From contig OU015568.1 of the NCBI GenBank assembly GCA_907165135.1, positions 14,705,208 to 14,769,207 of the forward strand: a DNA stretch of 64,000 nt, given 5' to 3'. Every line of letters begins with the position of its first letter. Positions within the stretch are counted from its first letter, which is position 1. This document shows positions 16,676 to 43,977 of the stretch, in pieces. Made by a program: the position numbers and the translations under genes. The notes under the pieces were generated by a model. The model saw only the letters and a list, made by a program, of their open reading frames with translations. It did not search any database and had not been told where the DNA came from. Source of the stretch: Oikopleura dioica. Taxonomy: Eukaryota; Animalia; Chordata.

Positions 16676-19217
16676 CAGTTGGTATCCATCTTAAGAGGCC
16701 TTTTGAGATGACAAGGGCTGAGAGAAAGTCCTCTTAAGTTGGAACATTTCGAGTCAATTTAGGAATACATATTTTAAAATTCTTTTCTCACTAATGTCGA
16801 AGCTAAGCAGCATTACTGAAGTCAAAATTTGGACATTTGATGGAAAAATTGATCATGATTATTGTTTCCAGAACAAGGCGCGCACTTATGTTTTTAATTT
16901 TAAGGACCCCCATCAAGAATCGCGAAAATAGGGCATCTTAGTGAAAGTTTTCTCTAAAACTATCTTAGCCAGACCCTTAATTTTAATTGCATCCTTTAGA
17001 TCGAACCCTCTACTGCAACCGTTCCCTTTAAGATGATCTCTCGATGCCAAATTTAAGGTTATACAGGCCGTTAAAGGTAAAGTTGCTTAGTGAACGTTTT
17101 TTGGGGTTTTCGTTGGGGTATACCCTTAATATTTTTCATGGTAAAGTTAACGCCCTTAGCTACGACCGTTTGCTTTTTGAGAGTTTTTGTCGACGAACTT
17201 AAGGAAGACAGCCCCTTTAAAATTTTATAAGTCGAATCTTAGTCGAATTTCCAGATTTTAATTTTCAGTAATTATTGCCTAAATTGCCCTGAATAACGTT
17301 TTTATACTCGTGTTTATGATAGAAATAGTTTTTATGGTTGGTATACCCTTAATTACCATTAAAAAATAGCGAACTAAAGATTTTTAGGAAATGGACAATG
17401 TTAATTTTCAATTTTTGAAGGCATTTTCTGCCAAAATTTTCTATAAGATCAAAAAATTTTCTGAATTAAAGTTGTTCCTCGTGGTCTAAACAACCCAAAA
17501 AGCAAAAAAATTTGAAAATTTTGACTTTTTCATCTTGATGGGGGTCCTTAACTTGTTCATTCCTCGAAAAATATTTTGCTGGAAACATGTCCGAAAAGAG
17601 AATTCGCATGACGATGGCCGAGAAAAAAGTATGCAGAGATTTTGGTGAAAGGTGCAAACAAAAGAAATGCTAAAAGGCTGTAAATGAGCTCTATCGAAAA
17701 GAGCATGGACAAGATATTCCGAAATGTACATTTACAAACCTTTATAACAAAAGGTTTACGATCCTGTCATCGAAAACGAAGCACAAATACCAACTCACGC
17801 AGAAGAAATCTGCATCAATGCAAAAGCTCGAAGAAAAAATCAAGCAACTATACCCGAAACGCCAATATAAAATGAGACTTCGTGGAGTCGCGAGATGGTT
17901 ACGAAAAATGATCGATGAAAACTTCCCCGATGACAAAGAGATACAGGATCTATGTATTTCCAAACGCTTTGTCAAAAGAATAATACGTGACTATGGAAGA
18001 AAAACCTCCAAGAAAACTGATGTTATATTTCTCAGTGAAGAAGAGAAAAATTTCGAAATTCAGCGTTTACGATCCTGTCGTTCGAATTATCCATTGAGGT
18101 GAGGATTTGATAATTTATTTTTGAAATCATTAAATTATAGTGCTATTCTGAACTGTGACAAGACAGGCGTCAGCCGAGAGATTGACACGCGAAATCGTAT
18201 CCTGCTTGGATCAGATGATCAACTCTCGAAAATTGCTCATCAAAAAGAGCGGTTTACATATATCCCGACAATCTCTGCGTTTGGGCCGCTAAAAGATTAC
18301 CGCCCCGCAATCATAATAAGAAATCAAGGAAGTAAATGGAAAGGCGCACCAAGAAAGCAGATAGAACGAGTGGCCAACCCAAACTTCGACAACTCCAAGC
18401 CCTCCTCCTCTAAAAATCTCAAATTTCATGAAATAGAATTTCGAGATTTTAAAGGTAAAAATTGAAAAAAACAAAGCTTATTAATTTTAAGATTTTCGAC
18501 TATACTGGAATTCCTCCGCCTGGTGTACAAGAGCGATATTTATTCTGGAGCTGACTCGTCTTTCGGCGTTTTTGAAAGAAAAAAATCCATCGCAGCGTTA
18601 TTTGATGTATATCGATAACTGTCCGGCTTACAAGCTTCTTCCACAATTTAAAAATCTGCTACTACCTCGATGATTTTATCGTCGATCACGATCATCTTAA
18701 TATCACAGAGGAAGAGCTCGTGAGAAAAGCCAACGAAATCTTCACTTACATGAATCCAGCAATCTTCAAGCGAAATTGGATCAATACTGGACTGATTAAA
18801 GAAGAAGAATACGAGGAGAATGTTGAAGACGTCGAGGGCTTGGACGTTTTCGAAAGTATCTTGGAGAAAGAAGACGAAGAAGAATTGATCGAGCATTTCC
18901 TGGCGCTTCAGATCGATGATACACAAGCTGCGACCCCGATGGATATTGAGGAAGAACCTCAAATTCCAGGTTCAGATGAAGCCGACATTGCAAAGCCATC
19001 GCCTTCAAAATGGCCAGAAAAGCAGTCAAAGATTTCGAGTTTCTTTACTGTAAAAAAAAAATGCTTAATGACTCACTGTTTGCCAAGATATTTCCCGAAA
19101 TTTAATAAAAATCATCAAGAAAGTCCTCTTAAGTTGGAACTTTTTAGGATGACAAAATTAGCCAAATTGACGCAAAAGTCCTCTTAAGTTAGGGCCTCTT
19201 AAGATGGGTAACCACTG
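16676..19217 (+). mobile_element. pogo/Tigger-like DNA transposon, decayed, ~2.5 kb
   Basis: TA|CAGTTGGTATCCATCTTAAGAGGCC at 16676 and its near inverse GGCCTCTTAAGATGGGTAACCACTG|TA ending 19217; internal repeats AAAGTCCTCTTAAGTT at both ends. Confidence 0.85.
17588..18960 (+). pseudogene. Broken pogo-type transposase (HTH, CENP-B-like HTH, DDE_1 remnants)
   Basis: MSEKRIRMT.., KLEEKIKQLYPKRQ..SKRFVKRI, ILNCDKTGVSRE (NxDETG motif), IFKRNWINTGLI then acidic tail; in-frame stops and missing centre. Confidence 0.7.
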
Positions 19218-27976: not shown

Positions 27977-29191
27977 CTATTCAAAGGTCTGGTAGAAGAA
28001 GTTTCGGACAGAGTATACAGAAGCTGGTTCATAGTAATCGTCAGAAATGAAAACTTTAAGATCGCTGTCAGTGAAAACATCGCTAGTGCTGTAGGATCCA
28101 GCAATGACTTCCTCGCCGTCGACTGTTACAGAATACTCGGTTACGGATGGATCTGATTCGCGCTGATTGACTTCGACAGAATACGTGTTCCACTCTCCGT
28201 CGGTGCAGGCGAACGTAGTAACATGTTCATGATGGCTCGTTGTTGGGTTGTCCACAGAGATGTAAATCCTGTTTTGGTTTGGTCGTCGCCAAAGTGCGAA
28301 TACTCGATTGCCAGATTGGCCGAGATCGCCACTGCCATTACCAACACGAAGAATGTTTCTCCACTGACCATCGGTAGAAAGGTCCTTATTGCAAAGAACA
28401 TCTGCAGATAATTTGTAGCTGATAGCAGGGGTGACAGTGGAAACCTGGTTATTTCTTGATGGGCGGACTGCACAGCTATCAACGAAAGTGTTACAATTCT
28501 CGAGTCCATCGCAAGGATCAGTGCCATCTGTGCAAGCGACTTCCGCAACTTCATCAAAAGTTTGGTAGTAGAAATTTCGAACGGCATAGGTTGAAGCTGA
28601 CTCGTAGAAATCATCTGAAGCCGAAACTTGAAGAGCGCCCTCGGACAAGGTGCCTGATTTATCGTAAGATCCTTCAAAGATCTCTTCATCATCAAAGGTG
28701 AGAACGTATTTGAGAATTGATGGGTTTGCTTCGACTTGGCGAACTTCAACAGAATAGGTGTTCCATTCACCCTGAATGCACTCGGCAGTAGTTACTCGCT
28801 CCTTGTGACTCGTTGTAGGATCGTTGACGGAGATGTAAAGCCTGTTTTGATTCGGTCTTCGCCAGATAGCGAATACTCGATCTCCGATTTGGCCGAGATC
28901 GCCACCACCACCGATGCGGAGAACATTTTTCCATCGACCATCGAGAGGCATGGCATGATCACAGTAAACTTCAGCGGAAGCTTTGAAATTCAAAGCGGCT
29001 TCAACTGTTGCTAACTGCTGATTTCGTGCAGGGAAGACTTCGCATTCATTGACAAAAGTCTCGCAATTGGCTTTACCATCGCATGGACTAGGGCAGGTAA
29101 GGTCTTGGTAGTAGAAATTTCGGACAGAGTAAGGAGTAGCAGCGCCGTACCACTCGTCAGCAACGAAAGCTTGAAGATTTCCTTCACTCAG
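27977..29191 (-). CDS. Protein of tandem ~150-170 aa LamG/ConA-like repeats with Cys-rich linkers; 5' part lost in gap
   Basis: Two full units and part of a third: PC..C.TFV..C...P.RN.Q..TV, W.N.LR.G.G.GDLGQ.G.RVFA.WRRPNQNR.YISV, V..SDD.YE.AS.Y.VRNF.YQTF. Confidence 0.7.
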   Translation of the reverse strand: MSEGNLQAFVADEWYGAATPYSVRNFYYQDLTCPSPCDGKANCETFVNECEVFPARNQQLATVEAALNFKASAEVYCDHAMPLDGRWKNVLRIGGGGDLGQIGDRVFAIWRRPNQNRLYISVNDPTTSHKERVTTAECIQGEWNTYSVEVRQVEANPSILKYVLTFDDEEIFEGSYDKSGTLSEGALQVSASDDFYESASTYAVRNFYYQTFDEVAEVACTDGTDPCDGLENCNTFVDSCAVRPSRNNQVSTVTPAISYKLSADVLCNKDLSTDGQWRNILRVGNGSGDLGQSGNRVFALWRRPNQNRIYISVDNPTTSHHEHVTTFACTDGEWNTYSVEVNQRESDPSVTEYSVTVDGEEVIAGSYSTSDVFTDSDLKVFISDDYYEPASVYSVRNFFYQTFE

Positions 29192-29691
29192 NNNNNNNNN
29201 NNNNNNNNNNNNNNNNNNNNNNNNNNNNNNNNNNNNNNNNNNNNNNNNNNNNNNNNNNNNNNNNNNNNNNNNNNNNNNNNNNNNNNNNNNNNNNNNNNNN
29301 NNNNNNNNNNNNNNNNNNNNNNNNNNNNNNNNNNNNNNNNNNNNNNNNNNNNNNNNNNNNNNNNNNNNNNNNNNNNNNNNNNNNNNNNNNNNNNNNNNNN
29401 NNNNNNNNNNNNNNNNNNNNNNNNNNNNNNNNNNNNNNNNNNNNNNNNNNNNNNNNNNNNNNNNNNNNNNNNNNNNNNNNNNNNNNNNNNNNNNNNNNNN
29501 NNNNNNNNNNNNNNNNNNNNNNNNNNNNNNNNNNNNNNNNNNNNNNNNNNNNNNNNNNNNNNNNNNNNNNNNNNNNNNNNNNNNNNNNNNNNNNNNNNNN
29601 NNNNNNNNNNNNNNNNNNNNNNNNNNNNNNNNNNNNNNNNNNNNNNNNNNNNNNNNNNNNNNNNNNNNNNNNNNNNNNNNNNNNNNNNNNN
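29192..29691. other. Assembly gap (500 N)
   Basis: Run of N. Confidence 1.
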
Positions 29692-32022: not shown

Positions 32023-32932
32023 AAATTATAGAAAGTACTTTTAGCTAAAATCAGTCTTACTTTGGCAGCAGTAAAGAATATATAACATACCCCCCCCCCA
32101 AGTTTTCGCGCATTCCTCGGTACATTTTCCGTAATTTACTCTTCCTGATTTGTTCAAAACCCCCCAAATTTACGCCGCTTAACTTTTCCGCGCGCCCCGA
32201 AAATTTCTTCTCCTAACTTTTCTGCGTGCGCCCAAATTTACTCTCGCGGCGCTGATTCGCCTCATCGATTAATTTTCTGAGTGCGCAAAAGTCTTGTTTA
32301 GCTCGCTCCGGGCAATGAAAGGATTATCTTTTATAAAAAGCCAGATGCCTTAATAGGTCAGCCCTATTTTATGTTATTTTTGATAAAATTATTGTTTATT
32401 ATTTCAATGAAGTTAATAAATATTTGATAGAACGTTTTTCTAGTGCGAAAGATGAAAACGACATCTGTGGAGCAAAATCCTGACCTCAATATTTTAAGTT
32501 ACTCGAATGGTACGATTTTTATGTGTCCAAGCCACGAAAAAGTTCCAATTCTAGCGCCTCAAGTACCTGAAAACCAACTGTATTCGACTGCTTTTCTGTT
32601 AATACAACTTTGAAAACATGCACTAATAAATAAGTATTACTAGAAATAATGATATTCTGTCATAACTTAGTATTTGTTTGTTGATTGCAATTAACTGAAA
32701 GGAAAATTTTATTAAACAATGATTAAACATACAATGTCGCATTACTTTGAGGAAGTTTATCCATCATATTTACGTATGATTATCTCTTCCGGCTATTTTT
32801 GAACCGGTTGAGGCACACACGGGTGGCGCCCGAGCGCTCCGTCCCCGTCGGGCAATATCTTGCTCTTCAAATTTCGCTATAATTTTTAATAATTTATGAC
32901 TATTTATTTTTAAATTATGGCCTTTGTATTTA

Positions 32933-35900
32933 ATGGCAAGAAACCGGACAAAAAAAACCGGTAAAGAAAAGAAGCCGAGAAAGAAAAGAGGGCCCTACGG
33001 AAGTTCGTCGACTTTGAAAGAGAGAGCGGATGCATTGAAAATCATCGTCGCAAGAAAGGATGCAGGAGAATCGTAAGTTGTTAGATTTTTTAATATTTTC
33101 TTTAATCTTGCACTATTTTTACTAATGAAAGATTATCATAAAATGAAACTAAAGTCGTAATCGTAAGTTACAAATACCTGCCCAATGCCCTTTTAAACAA
33201 TCATCAAAAAATCACAAAAATTCCATCAAGGAAATTAATGGTGATGAGTCGACACCCTTAAATGCCTTCTTCAAAATAATCTTTATCGGTTTTTAACAAA
33301 ATTTATTAACAAAGTTTATAATGGAAACAGTTTCATAATCGATCTTTATATACGGCTTTCCTCGGCGCATGCTTTCCAAATCCGATTCTACAACTTCAAG
33401 GCGTTCTGATTAAGAATTGCGCGAATTTGTTTGATCCTCTGAGGCCGTAATGGTGGGCGCTTACGTGGACGAGTGGTGCTTGAAGGTTGTGTCGGAGGGG
33501 CCCCAGGGATCAAGATCGCCGTTAGAGAAGATCGTGTTCGAAGTAGCTTCCAGGTTGTCGGCCCAGTATTTGATTCTAAACCGATGTTAGGGACGAATAG
33601 TAAAGAAAACAAATATCCGCCGTTTCTATTGCGTGAAAATACACGACTCGCGGATTCTTTTAAAATTTCAAACTTTTACACTTTAGCTCAACATTGCGGA
33701 ATAGCTTCTTTGGATCATAGTCAAGCTCGTCCGCTGGTGGAAGGCTTGTTTTGCTTTTTATACAAGCTCGAAAATAAACAGGGAAAAGATTGTTTCTTTT
33801 AAAACTCTTTCCTGTCAGTTTTGTAGATTGGAAGAAGAGAGCTTAAGGAGGTGCTTTGTTAGAATTTCGTTAAGCTTTTACCAAAGGGGGAGGACTTACG
33901 GCTTATCTTCAAGTTCTTCTTCGAGCCCCTGCTCAAGAATTTGGCGCGGATTAGGTAACGATGATTTGGACTGGGGAATGAAGACTTTGTTTTTCAGGAA
34001 ATCTTGGAATCGCTCAGCGTATAAGCCAGGCCGCACCACTAGAATTGACGTTTTTTGAATTGATTTTTTTTATGAAAAGAAGACCTGAAATCCCGTCGCC
34101 ATTTGTGTAAAGATTTTTGATGAAATATTCCGTTTTCTTGAGAATTTTGTGGCACTGGAGGATGTCGATAATTCCACAATAAATATGAACTTGTGTGCCG
34201 TCGGGAAGTAGTGCAGGCAAGCCCTAGTTCTGGTCGACTTTGTGCTGAGAGAGTTGAAGATTCACTTGCGAGTCAGTGAAGACCTGCTCCATTGGCGACG
34301 AGTATAAGGCAGAGCGCTATAACGAAAATGAGGATGGGTCAATAAGAATGCTCAAATAAGTCCTCCGACTAATAAGGAACCCGGATTTCAAAGCCAAGGC
34401 ATGAAAAAGATTGAAATTCATAGATTAAATACAATCGGGGTTCTGATGGGCTGGAGGCTTTTTTTGAGCATTTTTATTCGTCCAAAAAGAACTGTCTGAA
34501 CGAAGTTTTAGGAAGATAGACTTACTTTGTGAAAGGATTTCTTGTTTCGTTTTCTTTTGACCAGAGAGCTCTTGCCTGAGTTGCCTCTGGAATTACTCGC
34601 GCTCAAGCTCATCGACTCCATACTAGCAATCTCCGTTGTAGAAGTTCTTGAGGATAATTTAGTTTCTCGCCTCGATTAATTGGTTTACCTTAATAGCAGC
34701 TCCAGAAGCAGTTTCGAGCTGGATGTCATTTGTTCCATTGGAAAGTGATTTCTCGTTGATGATGATTTCCATGTCTTCAGAGTCGGTCAACAGCGTCAAG
34801 TCTCATCCAAAAGTTATTAGTGTTGAAAATCTAATGGAGGATAGAGTGAATGTTTATCGGAAGAATTGATCCTACCTTGAACTTGGAGACAGATTTGAAT
34901 TTGTCAACGTGCTCTTTTGGGACTTGGGCGATTTCCAAAAGTCTTCGTAGTCAATCAAGGTACCTCGCTAAAGATTTTCATGCAGTGCTTGTTGTCTGGG
35001 TTGACATGTGGGCGAGGATGTTCATGTCGACGGTTGCGCCAAGATTGTCGATGCTGGAAAGGAAGATTTAAAAGTGACGATTAGTCCTGAGACTTAAACC
35101 AAATTCGCTTATTATTACTTTGCCCTGCTTTATGAGCTCTTCAATCAAACCAGAGTCGTAAAGGGCCATGTAGATGTCACCGTGGGTACCATCCTTGAGG
35201 TTGTAGAGATCCTTGGTGGGGACGGGGAGAAGGGTTTCTTTGTTGATTCGTTGGAAGCTGGTTGAACATTTTGATGTCGACCTGGCAGTTGTTGTTCTTT
35301 CGGAGGATCTTTCGGGTGTCTTCTTCGGTGTTGAAGGAGTTCATCAAAACCAAGGGGACGTTGGTCTCGTAGGTCTTGTTCAAGTGCTCGATTTGCTGAA
35401 CAGTCAAGTCCAAAAAGTTCAATCCAGATCTGACGGAAATGATCGACTTGGGACAAGTGAAGCCCGTGGAAGTACCGCGACCACCATTGAGCTTGATGAC
35501 GACCACTTTCGTTTTTCCAACGATCAGAGCCTTAAAATTACGTTAAGATATGTCCAGATTGGCAATGACCTTGGTATACACAAAGACAAAGTACGATATT
35601 GGTATGATCACAAGGACAAGACATACGCGAGCCTCGAAGTGCATGGAACTGAAGACAATCGACAAGTTTATAACGCTGGAAGAATTGATTTCGAGAAGTA
35701 GTAGCCTAATAACAATTCTCTAATTAATTCTTATAACTTTAGAACCATCCATTTCTCTCTTGCTGACAAAGAGGATGACATCATCGAAGAAGCTGAACTC
35801 ACGAACATTTCCCGCAGAGCCTTAGATGCTGACAATGGAAAAGTTTTACGTCCATTAGACTGTTTCAGAGCTAGAGTAAACAACCATGCAATTCAATATG

Positions 35901-38900
35901 GAAAAACCTGTCCTGAGGAGTACAAAAACAACAGTCGAACATATTCAAGTACTTATTTAGTTGGTAATAAGTGACCTACCTTTTAAATATTAACCAAAAT
36001 TAAGGCAATACCGGAAAAAACCGAAGAGGAAGTACTGTTTCATTAGTCAAACGACTTGGCTTTGGGATGGAAAAACAAACGGAGCAAAAGAAACCAATCG
36101 AATTTTCTAAACTTGCCGGTCATACAGCTGAACTTGTCGATAAAATTAATAATCGTAACCCGTCAGGAACGGCTTCATTTACTCTTATTGTAATGTTAAA
36201 AATACAAAATGAAACCTTTAAAAGATGTTATGAATATAGACGAGAAGAAAGTAGAGCTACAACGTGCACATTCCAAAGGATGGGGCTCCAAGAAGGTGAA
36301 TTGGAATAGAAAGCAGCTCGGAAACAAGCGTATCGGAGCGACGAGCCTTACTGCGATTGCTGCTGATGGTTCAAGAAGATGGTCAACAGGAAATTTTATA
36401 AATATTAATCTTAAAGATAAACCTTTTTAGTAGCTTCGGCAGTTCTAGTTTTCTCCAACCAGTCGTTGAATTCTTTTTTGTCGTCTTCAGCTTTTTGCAT
36501 CGCTCTCTCCGAGTAGTTGTTGATTTTGATCAGATTTTCCTTCTTCTCGGCTGCTTTTAACGACTTTTTCCATTCATACCGGATCATCTAAAATTTTTCT
36601 TTTATAAAATTTATAAAAAATATCAAGTAATCGTGGCGAATATCCCGAAGGAGCTCACTAAAGTCGCCAAAAAACAGCTGATCTACAAGACGGAGAATTT
36701 TTCATATTATTATATGAATATCGTTACGATGACGTGTGATGGCCCGAAGGATCTACATCTATACACAAGTAGCAAGGCTTCGATGACCAATGTGATTTGG
36801 ACGCACATGATCACGAGATGGAATGCTGAACTGGTGGAAGATAATCAGCACATTTTACTTTTATTGGGTTCTTTATCTTATTAAAAAAATAATGAATTAT
36901 TAAAACTATTTAAGACAACGCGTCCCAGCACGGCTTCTTGAAAGGAATGGACGCTGAGCATTCCAACATCGAAATGGCCTTTCTGCTGGCTAATTCCACT
37001 GATCTCTGTCAGGTAATTTTTCCGAAGATGAGTGGTAAGAGATTGAGTGAGCTTTGGTACTGACGTGAATGGAGCTAAATCTAAATGACAAATTGCCTAA
37101 TTTATGAAATGAACAATTTTCTAACTCGAAATTCAAAACTTCAATTTTAATTAATGGCTTCGAAAAATAGAAATTGGAAAAACCGGAGCTGAGATAAAAT
37201 GAGACTAAAACTGGAGCCAGCCGAAGGTACTGTATTCGAAGATAGGCCGGAAAAAAGGAAAATAGGTTTTGGAAAACAACAAGACGGATATTCATAAAGA
37301 GACGAGTAAATCTGTAAATGTTTGGTTATTTTTGTATGTATTAATTGTATCGTTCCTTTTTCAGCGATCGTGAGTTAGGCTTTATGGGGAATAATGAAGA
37401 TAGTGATGGGTTCAATAAATGTCTTAATTTGTCGATAAACAAGATTCAAGCGCACAAAGGAACAAAGGATTTTGTACAAAAATGCAAAGAGAGTAAGCTT
37501 TTAGTTGATAAAAGTTGCAAACAAATTGAAATTGAAAATTGGTAAAATAAGAAAAAGAATCTTCGCTTGAAAATGGAGCTGAATTCGAAGGTTTCCGAAG
37601 AATGGTCGTGCGGGCGGAGCAGCGGGTGGTCATCTCGAGCTTTTTTGAGAACGAGAGTGTTAACTTGTTGCAGCTTCGAGGATCTGGCAGTCGGAGCAGA
37701 CGAACTTCGGGTCGTCGCGGACGTCTTTCGGGTTAACGTTGAGGCAGAACATGTGGTACCATTTTGCGCAGCGCTCGAAATAGACCCGCTCGAATTTGTT
37801 GCCGTCTGGACGCTTGCATTGGCCTAAAAATGCGTGAAAACACAAAAACTTTATCCATCTTACCAGCAACGCAAGGTCCATCATCGTCAACATCCTCGTC
37901 GTCGTCCTCGTTTTCACTCGTTTCTTGTTGAAATTGAGTCCGAGCTCCTTTGTTTTTCTTCCGCGGATTCTGCGAGCGTCGTGGGAGATCGGAATCCTTA
38001 TCGCGTCGTTTACGATTCGGCGCCTTGTTTTAGAGATAAGAACATTTCAAATTTTCAAAAAAAAAACGCTTACGTCGCAGCTCATGGTGTAAGTTCCAGA
38101 AGTAGCATTTGGGAAAAGGAAGGAGTTGAACTAGAACTGAATCGCTGCAGCATCTGACTGGCCAGAAGAGCCGAACTGGAAGTCAACGATTGCATTGGGG
38201 CAGACGTTGAGGACTTCGAGGGTCGAACTTTTTCGCCTTCAATAGTGTTCAATTAAACCATATTTCATAGAAACTTACGATTATGACTAGGAAGTTGAGG
38301 GCGTAAAATGCATCCAGCAAATAGTCCAGCTAGGAATTCACTTGTACATCAATTGATGCTACCATGCTTGAGAACCTCTTTCAGGAACATTATCTAACCA
38401 AAGTTGTTCGTTGAATGATGAGATTTGGAGACTTACTAAATATTGAAAGTTGTTTTGCGATCTGAGGTCGAGCTTTTCAACGAGATTTTTACAAAGCCTC
38501 ACGTGGTCCACGATGACAAGGCAAATTTCAAAATGCGAACATAAGATTATTGGGAAGGGATTCGAATTGTGGAAGAGCAACAATACTTCTGCCACGGAAG
38601 CAACTGAACCTGGAAGTGTCTCGATCTAAAAGTAGTTTTCTGTAAATCCATGGTTGACGATGTGATTCAGTAAAACGTAGAAAGCAGGTTGAAATTCTGC
38701 TCCCTCATCGAAGCATCGTTTGAGGCATTCTTTTCTGAGAAAAAATGTTGAGGGTCTCGAATTTATCTTGAAAGTACCTAATTGATTGAGAACTAGAGAA
38801 GTCGCAGGATATAAAGGAAGCTTTTTTGAAGAATGAATGTGTAAGAGCAATGAATGGCATTCCAAACGCCGAGTATGTTCAGTTTCCGGAAAGAGTTATG

Positions 38901-41300
38901 TAATGATCAGGCCCGTTTTTCAACTTGAGGATGAGAATGAGATCGTCGACGGGATTCACGAACTTGTCTCCTTGCTTCACACCGAAGTTGAACTTTGAGA
39001 CGACTTCTTTATTGATGTTGAGATCGAATCCTATTGTATAAATTGAGGCATCTCCACTATCTGGCTGTAAGATTACCTGAAAATAACTTCAAATCATGGA
39101 TTTTCATTGCAATTTACCTTATTTGGATCGATCCACAAGCCGATGTTTGAATTAAAAGCTTCGTAGATGTCCTTGTCCGGCGAGAACACTTTCGAATCGA
39201 TGATCTGAAACTGCGCCAGCGTCTTTCCCGTATTCTGCGATCGCTCGTTCCAAAAATTTCAGCTTTCCAAAGTCGATTGCTTTGCTTGAAACAGCCTTTG
39301 CGGAATAAGCTCAATCTCGTGCTTGTCTAGCCAACTGGTAACTTCTTTGTACACGGAGTAGTAGATTTCTTTGTTGATCCTCTCGGTTCGGGCGATGAAA
39401 CTGGCAAGGATTGGTTTGTGGTCAGAAATGGTTATTGAAGGATGTGAAGAATAAGACAGACATTCTACGGATTGTTGTCATTGGCACATATTGATCGCTG
39501 GTTTCTGGGAAATCATCTTGAGTAGTTGAGCTCTCGAATTTTCTTCGTTGATTTTTTCTTTCTAAATAAATTTAAGCCGGCGGATCAGGGATATCACGCA
39601 ACTCTCGGCAAGTTGATGCGATCATGGGTGACAGAGCAGTACGCGAAAAATGATGAACCACCGAATCGAGCTGACGCAGTCCTCAAAGTCAATGAAGCGG
39701 TCTACTGTATTCACCCAGATTGCATCATTGGTTCTTATGCAAGAAGGAAAGTTAATTTTGCATTCAAAAGAATGTGAGAGCTATAACTTTTAGAAACAGT
39801 ACCTAGTGCATTTCTCCTGATCAGTTTTCTTTCGAAAGTTCTTTGTAAGAGCCGGCAGAGTTTGAACGCATATTCTTCTTGATACAGGCAGCACTCGTTC
39901 AATTTGATCCTAAAAATGAAATTAAAAGTAATAAAAAGTGAAATTAATGATAAAAGCGGACTTCTTCACGCTGATCTCGTCAACGAGGAGAAAAACCACG
40001 TCAATCGAGAACTTCCAAAGGCCCCAGAAGAAGAAAAGGCGCGAAAAAAACGAAGAGAAGGAAAAGAATCACTCTACAAGCTCTACAGCAAAGAAGTTTT
40101 GCAAGACTTTCTTTATAAGGACCCGATTATCGAAAGCGATCGCTTTTCTTATAAAACGCGAATAGAACTGAAGGTAATTAATTTGAGAGATATTTTCTGA
40201 TTTTAACTTTTTTTAGGAACCCGACATTGAATTGGAAGAGAGAGTGAAGAAGATTATTCAACTGAAAAACGCAGCAAAAGCTCGAAAATGCGCCGAAACG
40301 AAGAAAAAGAGGAAAATGGAAAGAAGTCAAACCAAGAAAAACCCGATCCCCGATGAGCCTGAAAAAGCACCAGAGGAGAAGGAAGAAGAAGTCGAATCCG
40401 AAGCCGAGGAACCAGAAAGAAAGATCCCAAGGGAGGAGCCACGGAACCGATATGTCCTGGGTCAATTGCTCACTCCAGCGGATTTCGAGAGCATCAGAGG
40501 CAATCGATGGTTTTTCAGCACAGCAGTCGACGCTTTTTTACCGTGTTCTTGAGCATGAACATCCTGAAATTGCGGCAATATCCGTGAATGTATCTGTAAG
40601 TCTATAAAATTTTTTAAAGAATAACTATTTTCTAAGATTTCTTTGGCCAGTCAATCACCGGAAATGGCGAAGAATTTTTTCAGTGGAAGATTGTTCGAGA
40701 CAAAGGAAAGAATCCTGATTCCAATCCATCAATCGTAAGTTAAATAAATATCTATTTTTATGCACTAATGGACTTCTTCCTAATTAAATTTCATTCTAGT
40801 GATCCTATTGGTCATTATTCTCTACTTCAACTCGATCTTGCTCTACAGGAATGTACCTACTTTGATAGCCTTGCAAATCTCTATGGAACTTCTCAAGAAA
40901 AATCCGATGCTAAAAAAAAGAAAAAAGAAATTTTGGACTTGCTTCTACCTTTCATTGGACAACGATTTGACGAACAATTTGCCCGTGGATTCATCAAAAA
41001 CACATTTCTGGACAAGAACATTGCGAGCCCGTCAACTGGAAAATGGCGATCGAAATGCGCAGAGCTACCGACAATGCAATTGGATGGACACTCCTGTGGT
41101 CCGTGGATTTGTCACTTTGCGGATTGTCTAGGAAAGCGATTTATAATTTACCTTGATTTCTTGTCGAATTCTTTTTTGATGAAAGCAGCAATGTTCTTTC
41201 GTTCCCGGAAAGTGCGTTTTTGGCCTTCGAGAGCTTGCTGAGAGTACTGATCCGTGAAGGTGTAGAAGCTGGATGTGTGGAACTCGCGGAAGATGAACGT
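32933..41300 (+). CDS. Intron-rich pogo (DDE_1) transposase fused to Ulp1/C48 SUMO-protease domain; near intact
   Basis: Exons 32933-33072, 35548-35697, 35743-35948, 36005-36166, 36225-36389, 36628-36867, 36915-37012, 39577-39746, 39957-40173, 40217-40589, 40637-40733, 40800-~41130 join in frame (one T-run slip near 40540): KRGPY..GES|YVQIGNDLGIHKDKVRYW (HTH), NIDEK, TSLTAIAADGS, KASMT..ILLLL|DNASQH, FLLANSTDLCQ|PADQG, SYAR|SGLL, PIHQS|DPIGHYSLL, FDSL, QLDGHSCG. Confidence 0.8.
33340..33760 (-). pseudogene. DPP7: Captured 3' fragment of DPP7/PRCP (peptidase S28)
   Basis: YWADNLEATSNTIFSNGDLDPW and SAHHYGLRGSN match S28 SNIIFSNG.LDPW..AHHLDLR; stops and frameshifts; DPP7 vs PRCP not resolved. 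Confidence 0.75.
33896..34625 (-). pseudogene. PIP5K1: Captured 3' fragment of type I PIP 5-kinase
   Basis: RSALYSSPME, GLPALLPDGTQVHIYCGIIDILQCHKILKKTE, then exon VRPGLYAERFQDFL (cf. LYIGIIDILQSY..HRPGFYAERF); internal TAG stop; introns retained. Confidence 0.85.
34625..35525 (-). pseudogene. UGP2: Captured central fragment of UDP-glucose pyrophosphorylase
   Basis: [47 protein letters not shown]..HGDIY (frameshift), IDNLGATVD, LEIAQVPKEHVDKFKSVSKFK, FNTNN, QLETASGAAIK; introns retained. Confidence 0.93.
36423..36587 (-). pseudogene. Orphan 165-nt antisense exon inside transposase intron 5
   Basis: TTTTAG|..|GTTTAT splice sites on minus strand; open 55-codon frame MIRYEWKKSLKAAEKKENLIKINNYSERAMQKAEDDKKEFNDWLEKTRTAEATKK. 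Confidence 0.5.
37640..38240 (-). pseudogene. Fragment ending in a PHD finger (resembles the KDM5 C-terminal PHD type)
   Basis: NKAPNRKRRDK..EDDDEDVDDDGPCVA|GQCKRPDGNKFERVYFERCAKWYHMFCLNV..FVCSDC; one Cys ligand replaced by F. Confidence 0.65.
38280..39480 (-). pseudogene. OCRL: Captured 3' half of OCRL/INPP5B (5-phosphatase end, ASH, RhoGAP-like)
   Basis: YSSHPSITISDHKP, LILILKLKNGPDHYITLSGN*TYSAFG, IETLPGSVASVAEVLLLF, LAGLFAGCILRP; stops and frameshifts; introns retained. Confidence 0.88.
39803..39909 (-). pseudogene. Orphan 107-nt antisense exon inside transposase intron 8
   Basis: TTTTAG|GATCAAATT..GCACTAG|GTACTG on minus strand; two open frames; unidentified. Confidence 0.35.
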
Positions 41301-41733
41301 CTTTTTTTTACAAATTTGCCGTCTAGATCTTTCAGTCAGATTAGACTTACTAAGCCAGTCTTTAATTGATTCAAAAATGAGCAGTTCTTGCTTTTATACC
41401 TCGCTGAATTGATAGCCCCGTTTTCTCGGAGATAGCGAGTGATGTTGTGCGAAGTCGCGTTTTGGGAGCTCTTCTTCAAGTGAATAAAGGGATTTGACAG
41501 GAAAAAGCTTAGAATGTTGATGTCATGCCACTAAAAAGGGTAAACAGACTAATAGATTAAGAGAAATGGCTGGAATATTTTTAGACAGTTGTTTGAGTTT
41601 TCAGAATATCACGCGGAAACATTCCTACAGAAAGACAAATCAATAACGAGCGAAATAAATATAGTGGTCGATGATTAACGGAGAATATCTATTGCGAGAC
41701 AAAGGTGCGGCAGAACGAGTCGTAAATAAAATA

Positions 41734-42121
41734 GGTGGTGGTCTAAACTTTGAAGTTCGTATGTGCGATAAGAACTTCGGGTGGCCTAAACTTTGATCGT
41801 TCCCATGTGTGGCTCTTTGAGAAAGTGGCCTAAACTTTGAATTTCCCCGGAGGCGCTTCTGCCATCGGTGACTAGAGCTCTGCCTGCTAAGGCCACTACG
41901 CTTTAATCAGACCAATTAGGTTTACGGTTTTCATTCAGGGTGATGACACATGGAACTAGTCAGAGCGCCTCAGGGGAAATTCAAAGTTTAGACCACTTTC
42001 ACACATGGAAAGAATCAAAGATTAGGCCACTTTCTCATAGAATCACACATGGGAAGAATCAAAGTTTAGGCCACACAAAGTTCTTATCGCACGTAAGAAC
42101 TTCAAAGTTTAGACCACCACC
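41734..42121. mobile_element. 388-bp MITE nested in the large element
   Basis: TA|GGTGGTGGTCTAAACTTTGAAGTTC .. GAACTTCAAAGTTTAGACCACCACC|TA; subterminal GTGG(T/C)CTAAACTTTGA repeats on both arms. Confidence 0.88.
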
Positions 42122-42169
42122 TATTTTAGTACAAGCAGCAGTGTTTTAAACAAGACTGAGTTTACATGA

Positions 42170-42735
42170 AGTATCCGGCATTTTTGTATAAATGATTGCT
42201 GAAGATGTGAAGAGCATTGCCCCATTCCTTATCCTCTGCAATCTTCCGCGTTTCGAGGGAATTCTCGCGCTTTGGAAACGAGTTTCGCCAGTTGTTTGCT
42301 TTTCGATGTTGCCACTCGACATGGGCGGGATGTCGATAGAAGACGGAGTAGTTTTTGCTCTTCAAAAGATTTGGGACGCAGAACCACCTCGCTCTATAAA
42401 CCAAAAGTAAAAGAAGACAAACGGAAATTTTAACTTACTGTTGCGGGTGGCGTAGAGGTACTTGAAGATCGAAGCACGTCAATATTGATCGCATTCATCT
42501 TGCGCGAAATATTCTCGACTGACATTGAACGCTTCGCGACTGGGAGAACGTCTCGCCGTGTGTTCAAGTTTCTACGAAGGATTAACAATGAAGGAATTGC
42601 AAAAATTGTCATTACTTTTTGGCGAATCTTTTGGGACGCTGATATTTCCGGGAATAGCTTGGTAAGCTCCAGACGCAGTGGACAATGCGCTCATCCATCG
42701 ACGTTGCTTCTCGTAGCTTTCCGCTGCAAGCAGGA
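42170..42735 (-). pseudogene. Captured fragment with a PH-domain-like C-terminal helix and Ser-rich region
   Basis: VLLAAESYEKQRRWMSALSTASG fits the PH terminal helix pattern (AES..E...W..AL); gene not identified. Confidence 0.45.
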
Positions 42736-43110
42736 CATTGTCAATGATTTTATACATTCGTAGTCGATAAATTCCATAGTTTAATTGTTAGATTAGCGGG
42801 ACATGAAGCTATCAATTAATTATTTAGCAAATGATCCTAGTTGGCGATTTTTACCGAGTTATTTTCCCGTGGAATCAAATGCGCAGTCTTGAACGGTGTC
42901 TGTTTGTCCTTTTAGCGTCCTCTCAAATTCGCCACTTTTAAATTCCTAAATCTAGATCGCTTTAAAATGGAGTAAAAGAGAGAAGTCGTTACTTGATTTG
43001 CGAGTCTTCGAAAGCAGTGACGAGTAGACTGAATTGAGGATGGAAAATGGTTCTGCTGAACAAGGTAGAATTCGTGGTGCGGCTGTCTGTATTCTTTTGT
43101 CGGCACAATA
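42735..43110 (-). pseudogene. PAFAH1B1: Captured fragment of LIS1 WD40 repeats
   Basis: RTIFHPQFSLLVTAFEDSQIK | [30 protein letters not shown] | ASCPANLTIKLW vs LIS1 [55 protein letters not shown]. Confidence 0.88.
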
Positions 43111-43977
43111 AAGTGAAGTGGAATCTGCTCTCTGTTCGTGTCCATTATTTCCTGAAACGGTTAATTGTTAAAAGGATAGTAAGCATCTGTTCACTTTTTT
43201 TGATTAATGAACAGAGTATTCTTTTAAAATCGCTAATTAGCTTCCAAAAGGATCTCTCCAGCCGACAGCACAGAGATATGCCAGAGTGGAGAAAAACGAT
43301 TGAAGAAAGGGTAAGAATCAATAATATTTACGCTATTCTGAATAACTTATTCAATTTCTTTTAAAGATTCTCAAATACTGCCGTTGATTTACCTGCTAAG
43401 AAAACTCGCGATTTTATGTCGATTCACGCCGCAAACTCGATGTACAGCTATTGATGACGTCATTACTCCACCACCATAAACCACTGAAAATCATAAATTT
43501 TACTGTCATTCTTATCGCTTCAATAAAACAGACAATATTTAAAAATTAAAAAATAACAATGTTTAAAAAGGTAAAGGTGTATCAAAGGTCAGTGTCAGAA
43601 TATATTCCAAAATGTAATTTCTCTAACTAAGTTCTGGACTTAAACTTCTACAATTGATCTTCCTCTGGAAAAAAAAAGACTGAAATCCCTTGGCTTAATT
43701 TGGCGCTATGATTGGATAACGCGCCCGTTAATGAATCATTAGCGTTGACGCGCATTTCAGCGGCGCGCGAGTAAATTTTGGCGCACGCGGAAAAGTTAGG
43801 AAAGAAATTTGGAAACGCGGGGAACGCGAGGAAGCGTAAATTTTGGGTGTTTTAGAAAAGTTAGGAAACGGAAACTTGGGCGAAATACCACGAATTGCGC
43901 GGAAATTTAGGGGGGGGGTATGTTAGTTAATAAAAATTTCGATATTTTTCGAAAAGGGATTTTCTGAAAATCATTAC

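Follow-up and report, generated by a model that had tools for sequence, protein, structure and literature searches.

Host gene fragments fill a putative intron of a pogo-like transposase gene in the chordate Oikopleura dioica

The element and its transposase gene

The stretch of DNA considered here, positions 37013–39576 of a 64,000-nucleotide window of the Oikopleura dioica genome (contig C1 of the Nanopore-based assembly OKI2018_I69_1.0; coordinates without a contig name are those of the window), lies within an element of 11.84 kb (32085–43923, + strand) that is bounded by terminal inverted repeats (TIRs) and TA duplications (32083–84 and 43924–25) and carries a multi-intron transposase gene. 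The stretch is 2,564 bp long, has GT at its 5′ border and AG at its 3′ border, and separates exons 7 and 8 of a transposase model with at least seven introns. Exon 6 (36630–36867, +) ends with …QHILLLL and the first base, G, of the codon for the second catalytic Asp; this codon is split G|AC by intron 6 (36868–36914, +), an ordinary-sized neighbour of 47 nt with the borders GT…TTTAAG, as read from the sequence. Exon 7 (36915–37012, +) encodes (D)NASQH…FLLANSTDLCQ and adds 32 residues, and exon 8 (39577–39750, +, with its 3′ end at 39746 or 39750) starts P-A-D-Q-G, in which residue 3 is the third Asp. Splicing at TGTCAG|GTAATT (37012/37013) and TTAAG|CCGGCG (39576/39577) would join …ANSTDLCQ to PADQGYH… in phase 0, that is, the two halves of the pogo-type motif NSTxxxQ|PxDQG, with a spacing of 34 residues between the second and the third Asp (DD34D). 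These borders and this LCQ-PADQG junction are exactly those given in an earlier note made from the sequence alone, and the number that it assigned to the intron, seven, agrees with the count made by reading the sequence. The triplet P-x-D is absent from all plus-strand frames within 37013–39576, and a closer in-frame exon with this motif, which the note had considered as a competing partner of exon 7, thus does not exist in the stretch. Read without splicing, the frame meets a stop 16 codons past …LCQ (open reading frame, ORF, 36938–37063). Downstream of the transposase exons and on the same strand, a Ulp1-type Peptidase_C48 domain is found (40744–41238, +; E 9.9e-6).

Kinship with the DDE_1 (pogo-type) family was tested exon by exon, each exon alone, with a local profile of six Pfam-verified Oikopleura-type DDE_1 sequences run unfiltered against 1977 ORF pieces of the window. 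Exon 6 obtained rank 2 of 1977 (profile positions 300–351), exon 7 rank 4 (positions 351–382, abutting exon 6) and exon 5 rank 6 (positions 208–245), the three matches lying on one strand and in order. The alignment of exon 6 by hhalign ends on LLLL immediately ahead of the invariant D-N, and that of exon 7 puts the last residue on the invariant Q179 of the DDE_1 sequence L012, of which P180 is the next column. Exon 8 was misplaced by hhalign against the six-sequence alignment, with an insignificant result, since four of the six sequences stop short of this part of the domain; with a C-terminal DDE_1 profile, which was needed here, it obtained rank 2 of 1977, with PAD on P-l-d and 62 residues aligned gap-free. 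Among 2000 composition-matched shuffles, the real score was never reached for exon 6, and was reached once for exon 7, three times for exon 8 and 56 times for exon 5. By Atlas language-model features, 26 of 30 hits of exon 6 are DDE_1 (best score 0.95), and the nearest clusters of exon 8 are Tc1-like DDE fragments (0.89), which is a lead only. The placement of the stretch between the second and the third catalytic Asp, as the earlier note had it, is supported by these comparisons, since both exons match the profile collinearly and the join sets Q next to PxD. On this ground, the stretch very likely interrupts a DDE_1-like gene at its Q|P junction.

Several searches aimed at widening this comparison returned little. 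Two other DDE_1 genes of Oikopleura, used in word searches meant for a broader profile, gave only 3 and 2 matches. Metagenome scans, one with exon 6 and one with the Ulp1 piece, gave zero relatives. A helix-turn-helix domain of the CENP-B/psq type had no Pfam match in exons 1–4 taken singly, pieces so short that they are weak evidence of absence. Elsewhere in the window, an unrelated DDE_1-like remnant occupies 17674–18670 (+); its piece 18491–18670 tops both local profiles (E 4.4e-6 and 4.5e-7) and is unscored by Pfam.

A mosaic of host fragments

The parents of the intervening DNA were located by a search of the window's own genome together with local BLAST, and the parents' open frames were identified by Pfam. 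The 2,564 bp resolve into six blocks from four unlinked host loci (E = 0 for the two large ones), all collinear with the plus strand of the parent contigs; by the coordinates of PMC8008620, C1 is the pseudo-autosomal region, C4 chromosome 1 and C5 chromosome 2. In the window, the coding strands of all four parents oppose the transposase, as the earlier note had claimed for the OCRL-like and the PHD-ending fragments.

From the 5′ border onward, the first two blocks (37020–37064 and 37068–38054, −) derive from a KDM5-like gene at C4:9405668–9407110, with 98% and 93% identity. The parent locus contains a PLU-1 domain upstream and a C-terminal PHD finger. The part 37020–37662 (37020–37064 and 37068–37662, −) corresponds to the 3′ flank of this gene, and the part 37660–38054 (−) to its last two coding exons, which comprise an acidic stretch (37864–38029), a retained 40-nt intron (37824–37863) and the PHD finger with its stop (37660–37823); on the minus strand, Pfam detects the finger after the acidic run with E 8.7e-7. 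A 170-bp exon piece of a ZP-domain gene follows (38060–38229, −; 95% identity to C1:1517099–1517268, where an ORF at about 1.5 Mb matches Zona_pellucida ZP-C). Two further blocks (38228–38638 and 38636–39478, −; 92% and 89% identity) come from an OCRL/INPP5B-type gene at C1:11124346–11125748 (11.1 Mb), whose whole 5-phosphatase domain is recognised as Exo_endo_phos2 on two exons (172.8 and 70 bits), together with an ASH domain. The copied part (38228–39478, −) is the 3′ half of this gene and comprises the ~25 C-terminal residues of the 5-phosphatase domain, the ASH domain and what follows it. Minus-strand Pfam matches are the OCRL-like ASH domain (E 1.8e-4) and Exo_endo_phos2 positions 264–287 of 288 (SDHKP, the last motif of the 5-phosphatase domain), so that the captured piece lacks a complete catalytic domain. 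After 16 nt of filler without a parent match (39479–39494), the last block is a 59-bp exon piece of a PACS-1 gene (39495–39553, −; 97% identity to C5:8872378–8872436, where ORFs match Pacs-1 and C2_PACS_N).

The OCRL-like and the acidic, PHD-ending antisense fragments described in the earlier note are thus both present, but the ZP and the PACS-1 block had been overlooked, and ~640 bp of the presumed PHD-ending fragment (37020–37662) are non-coding 3′ flank. The parents are complete genes extending past every block, and therefore copying ran from gene to element. Small introns of the parents are present in the copies, e.g., 37824–37863 and the ASH-domain intron near 39070–39110, which means that the template was DNA or unspliced RNA and not mRNA. 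At the joints, the blocks have either 0–3 nt of possible overlap or 1–16 nt of filler; the two OCRL blocks meet at a TTT overlap (38636–38638), where 110 bp have been deleted. A templated origin of the 16-nt filler was considered and rejected, since its sole match elsewhere in the element is an 11-mer, with ~0.09 expected by chance. At the joint between the two KDM5-like blocks, the parent has a miniature inverted-repeat transposable element (MITE) in its 3′ flank (C4:~9405713–9406114, 402 bp, with the ends TTAAGGGGGTAG…CTACCCCCTTAA), which the copy lacks, and the copy reads GTG where the empty site would be TTA. This difference is explained either by insertion of the MITE into the parent after capture or by its excision from the copy, leaving a footprint. 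In all, the stretch is almost certainly a mosaic of transduplicated host fragments.

Decay of the captured pieces

The pieces had also been described as decayed, which holds strongly for the OCRL piece, with its indels and its deletion, and mildly for the PHD piece, which carries substitutions in an indel-free coding part. The OCRL copy contains nine small indels (3, 1, 10, 1, 10, 1, 4, 10 and 1 nt), most of them frame-breaking, in addition to the 110-bp deletion, that is, ten indels in 1.25 kb or about eight per kb. In the KDM5-like coding part there are zero indels and 7 of 113 residues are changed (ratio of nonsynonymous to synonymous changes, pN/pS, 0.34), and all eight indels of the KDM5-like block fall in the 3′ flank. 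The copied PHD finger lacks the full Cys4-His-Cys3 set, because its third zinc-binding residue, Cys in the parent, is Phe, and its Pfam score is 29.3 bits compared with 38.4 bits for the parent. Mismatches to the parents amount to 55/984, 9/170, 32/411, 54/842, 2/59 and 1/45 over the six blocks (153/2511 in total), and these rates are homogeneous (chi-square about 4.8, 5 degrees of freedom). Such rates agree with a single capture as well as with several of similar age, and the six blocks may have been captured in one event.

The shared direction of the pieces, and the frame and splice sites that the two KDM5-like exons retain, could also be taken to indicate a working chimeric gene on the minus strand, joining OCRL-ASH, ZP and acidic/PHD parts and nested in the intron. 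Such a gene is very improbable, given an OCRL part that begins mid-exon, without a start codon and with ten frame-disturbing changes, ZP and PACS-1 pieces of just 170 and 59 bp, a PHD finger short of one zinc ligand, and blocks that no common frame joins.

Further cargo and its orientation

Besides the four parents of intron 7, at least four further host genes have contributed to other parts of the element. A similar mosaic is found in intron 1, with UGP and PIP5K as parents, and the 3′ arm carries pieces of a WD40/LIS1-like gene and of a PH-like gene. Within the captured PH-like block of the 3′ arm lies a 403-bp palindromic MITE (41726–42128) that has dozens of genomic copies; because the PH-like parent is contiguous across the site, this MITE was inserted after capture.

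All seven parents with a fixed coding strand (UGP, PIP5K, KDM5-like, ZP, OCRL, PACS-1 and WD40/LIS1-like) are antisense to the transposase, and for the eighth, the PH-like gene, a strand is suggested. The one-sided probability of this bias is 0.008 on the assumption of independent pieces, and the test tells less in favour of selection if the blocks of one intron arrived together. Insertions within introns of host genes are tolerated mainly when their own splice and polyadenylation signals point the opposite way. The roles are reversed here, with host pieces inside the intron of a transposon, and the best explanation for the antisense uniformity is selection against sense-strand splice and polyadenylation signals within the transcribed unit; a mechanistic strand bias of capture is a possible alternative.

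A presumed remnant of the original small intron

The mosaic does not reach the borders of the stretch. Identity to a parent begins at 37020, leaving seven parentless nucleotides at the 5′ end (37013–37019, +; GTAATTT, including the donor), and 23 parentless nucleotides remain at the 3′ end (39554–39576, +), which include the acceptor and finish with TTTAAG, the same ending as that of intron 6. Neighbouring introns of the transposase gene are 41–47 nt long, start with GTAAT, GTAGT or GTTCT and end with TTTAG or TTAAG, so the 7 + 23 border nucleotides resemble the ends of these small introns. Across the O. dioica assembly, introns have a median length of 49 bp, and 11% of them are non-canonical (PMC8008620). 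On the simplest reading of these borders, the original would have been a normal intron of ~50 nt that was broken seven bases past its donor and then filled. Two other candidates for the nature of the stretch were rejected: a nested transposon, for which neither terminal repeats nor a target duplication were found, and an RNA gene inside the intron, for which there were zero Rfam matches.

The same borders bear on the possibility that no earlier intron existed and that the intron was born by repair, a break in the exon having been patched with filler in which GT and AG were present by chance or arose later. In Oikopleura, the turnover of introns is very high and breaks are repaired through microhomology, and the other DDE_1 genes of this animal lack an intron at Q|P, all of which would suit such an origin. 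It is nevertheless rather improbable, since the 7 + 23 border nucleotides come from none of the parents and are like the small introns of this very gene, down to the TTTAAG shared with intron 6, and since exon bases were neither lost nor duplicated; the similar mosaic in intron 1 is also more readily understood if introns are where such DNA is tolerated.

Mobility of the element and probable splicing of intron 7

The limits of the element were defined by comparison with its relatives. Seven short relatives and both long copies have the structure TA|ACATACCCC…GGGGTATGT|TA in unrelated flanks, and therefore the element spans 32085–43923 and duplicates TA, as in Tc1-mariner/pogo transposons. Its ends form inverted repeats of about 170 bp with 75–77% identity. 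In the genome, 70 termini of this family were found, compared with at most one for a control pattern, and apart from the two long copies all pairs of these termini are at most 1.7 kb apart. The second full copy is located 766 kb away and inverted (C1:~15504367–15516206, minus strand). Over 11,851 bp it differs from the window copy by zero substitutions and nine single-base homopolymer-length differences, and the identity between the copies ends at the element ends, with different right flanks. Runs of 500 N are present in the window at ~29190–29690 and on the left of copy 2 (C1:~15516209 onward), where the run starts two bases beyond the TA duplication.

This second copy is also what speaks against an assembly artefact, in which reads of several loci would have been chimerically joined. 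A Nanopore-based assembly with 500-N gaps nearby invites that suspicion, but the mosaic recurs with identical joints at two places whose right flanks differ, and the blocks are 2–11% diverged from their parents and not identical to them, which leaves an artefact barely credible.

No further copy of exons 6 and 8 was found in the genome beyond the two long copies. Since all other members of the family are at most 1.7 kb long, these two copies are the only visible source of enzyme for their own movement. Moreover, the copies are free of substitutions while the cargo is ~6% diverged from its parents, and therefore the element moved long after capture. From this mobility after capture, the lack of another enzyme source and the open exons, we infer that the gene worked with its cargo on board, with the intron removed. 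Judged from the sequence, the stretch is thus probably a spliced, working intron.

Several observations weigh against this view of the gene and its intron. Pfam DDE_1 scores none of the exons, and a genome-wide six-frame search with PF03184 gives eight other loci and not this one; six other DDE_1 ORFs of Oikopleura show no similarity to the element by tblastn, a word search with exon 6 is blank, and phmmer with exon 6 against 1.84 billion proteins returns one match, a bacterial repeat adhesin aligned over three repeats, which was judged spurious. The per-exon profile scores are only 3–9 bits and, because Pfam itself leaves the exons unscored, the kinship with pogo is built on weak similarity of individual exons. 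At least two other introns of the transposase model require non-GT donors (GA and GG), and the 2.56-kb intron is ~52 times as long as the median intron of the genome. On its left, copy 2 adjoins a 500-N gap. Of the nine homopolymer differences, two affect coding parts, at 32950 (exon 1), where the frame of the window copy is open, and at 40534 (Ulp1 region), where the shorter T-run of copy 2 gives the longer open frame; each copy may carry a frameshift, or these differences may be Nanopore errors. Finally, the argument for a working gene is partly circular, the exon model having been chosen by open frames.

Some of these points, namely the failure of Pfam, phmmer and word search to detect relatives, the possible frameshifts at 32950 and 40534 and the size of the intron far above normal, together with the presence of other DDE_1 elements in the genome, would equally be expected if the transposase gene were dead, the 2.5 kb being a disrupting insertion with an incidental GT…AG, and the copies having been moved by an outside enzyme or duplicated. 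This is unlikely, for reasons that lie in the stretch itself as well as in its surroundings. The interruption lies precisely between two codons of the best-conserved motif, with coding bases neither lost nor gained, and the 30 parentless nucleotides that persist at the borders look like the two ends of a mini-intron. The transposase exons have stayed open while the OCRL cargo took its many indels, and the cargo is entirely antisense. As for an outside enzyme, the other DDE_1 genes are dissimilar and there is no other long member with these termini, and as for duplication, the copies cease to be identical exactly at the TA duplications. The reading that the stretch is intron 7 of the transposase gene of a pogo-like (TA-duplicating, DD34D) transposon, once ~50 nt long and filled with host DNA from four genes, is favoured here and appears likely on the weight of these sequence features.

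Proposed mechanism

The host pieces would have entered the small intron during repair of a break with template switching, a route suggested because the short overlaps, the small fillers, the several unlinked templates and the retained introns fit it. A gap-filling/template-switching model has been proposed for animal Pack-TIRs, with a median microhomology of 2 bp (PMC8277862), and in O. dioica classical nonhomologous end joining has been lost, with microhomology-mediated end joining (MMEJ) active, according to PMC11067885, which cites Deng et al. 2018. Only antisense cargo would then have survived, because sense-strand splice and polyadenylation signals would wreck the transposase message. The spliceosome would remove the entire 2.56 kb and rebuild the catalytic core two residues ahead of the third Asp, and the cargo would have no function of its own.

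Activity of the cargo can be envisaged in two forms. Every transposase pre-mRNA would contain kilobases of RNA complementary to at least seven host genes, and this RNA could enter a small-RNA pathway and so silence the element by way of its host-derived tags or dampen the host genes; the genes to which the putative pre-mRNA is antisense include OCRL, the KDM5-like gene, PACS-1, UGP, PIP5K and the LIS1-like gene. Alternatively, the intron could be poorly spliced on purpose, giving a truncated DNA-binding repressor without the third Asp. In the Drosophila P element, intron retention restrains transposition. An active cargo in either form is nonetheless quite improbable, and a passive load within a spliced intron remains the preferred interpretation.

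Comparison with known systems

In plants, cut-and-paste transposons are well known to capture genes; in animals such capture is rare, at about two per 10,000 TIR elements (PMC8277862). The element described here resembles Pack-TIR, Pack-MULE and Pack-TYPE elements (PMC8277862, PMC8903248, PMC6379663) in that pieces of several unlinked host genes, together with their introns, are enclosed by the terminal repeats of a DNA transposon, and also in its short joints with microhomology or filler, its decayed cargo and the mobility of the chimera after capture. It differs from them in two respects. Pack-TYPE elements are non-autonomous by definition, whereas the Oikopleura element retains a complete-looking transposase gene, with open collinear exons, together with a Peptidase_C48 domain, and its cargo lies within the introns of the transposase gene and in the 3′ arm. 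A survey of 100 animal genomes reported 370 Pack-TIRs, mostly single-copy and made without transposition, and does not mention Oikopleura (PMC8277862). An animal DNA transposon with host protein-coding sequence is known in Turmoil-1 of Caenorhabditis elegans; two coding sequences are reported to have been taken into its terminal repeats and to be conserved (PMC2572040), whereas the Oikopleura element has at least eight decaying fragments in introns and in the 3′ arm. A search of the literature found no report of captured genes in pogo elements of Oikopleura.

With the pogo/Tigger elements (Tc1-mariner, Pfam DDE_1), this element shares the TA duplication and the TIRs and, in its predicted spliced product, the motifs LLLLDNxxxH and NSTxxxQPxDQG and the 34-residue Asp spacing. 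Unlike them, it is too divergent for Pfam and phmmer, has at least seven introns and contains a downstream Ulp1-type protease domain. In all, the case is one of animal Pack-type gene capture, unusual in that the captured DNA occupies introns of an element that still has its transposase gene.

The significance of the case lies in this combination. Classical captors have lost their own enzyme gene, and here a chordate element keeps one, stores 2.5 kb of host DNA in one of its introns and has moved since, in an animal with one of the smallest animal genomes. If the intron is indeed spliced, the introns of a transposon can serve as a safe storage of captured DNA, an intron of ~50 nt would have expanded fifty-fold in one step in a natural case, and template-switch repair would be open to study in an animal without classical end joining. 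The uniform antisense orientation, in turn, can be read as selection by RNA processing.

Other observations

A separate family of short elements of 1.1–1.7 kb (e.g., C1:6289133–6290556) has near-identical termini, TAACGTACCCC, and otherwise no similarity to the element. Capture of host genes by the short relatives of the element itself was considered and rejected, as the one internal insert that was followed up (C1:11525542–11526226) is a nested repeat and not a host gene; this repeat of 685 bp has about 30 genomic copies and lies within two relatives of the element, each 1.4 kb long. Intron 5 of the transposase gene (36385–36626, roughly 240 nt) holds an antisense ORF of 58 residues from Met (36414–36587), for which neither a genomic parent nor a Pfam family was found and which may be an older captured piece.

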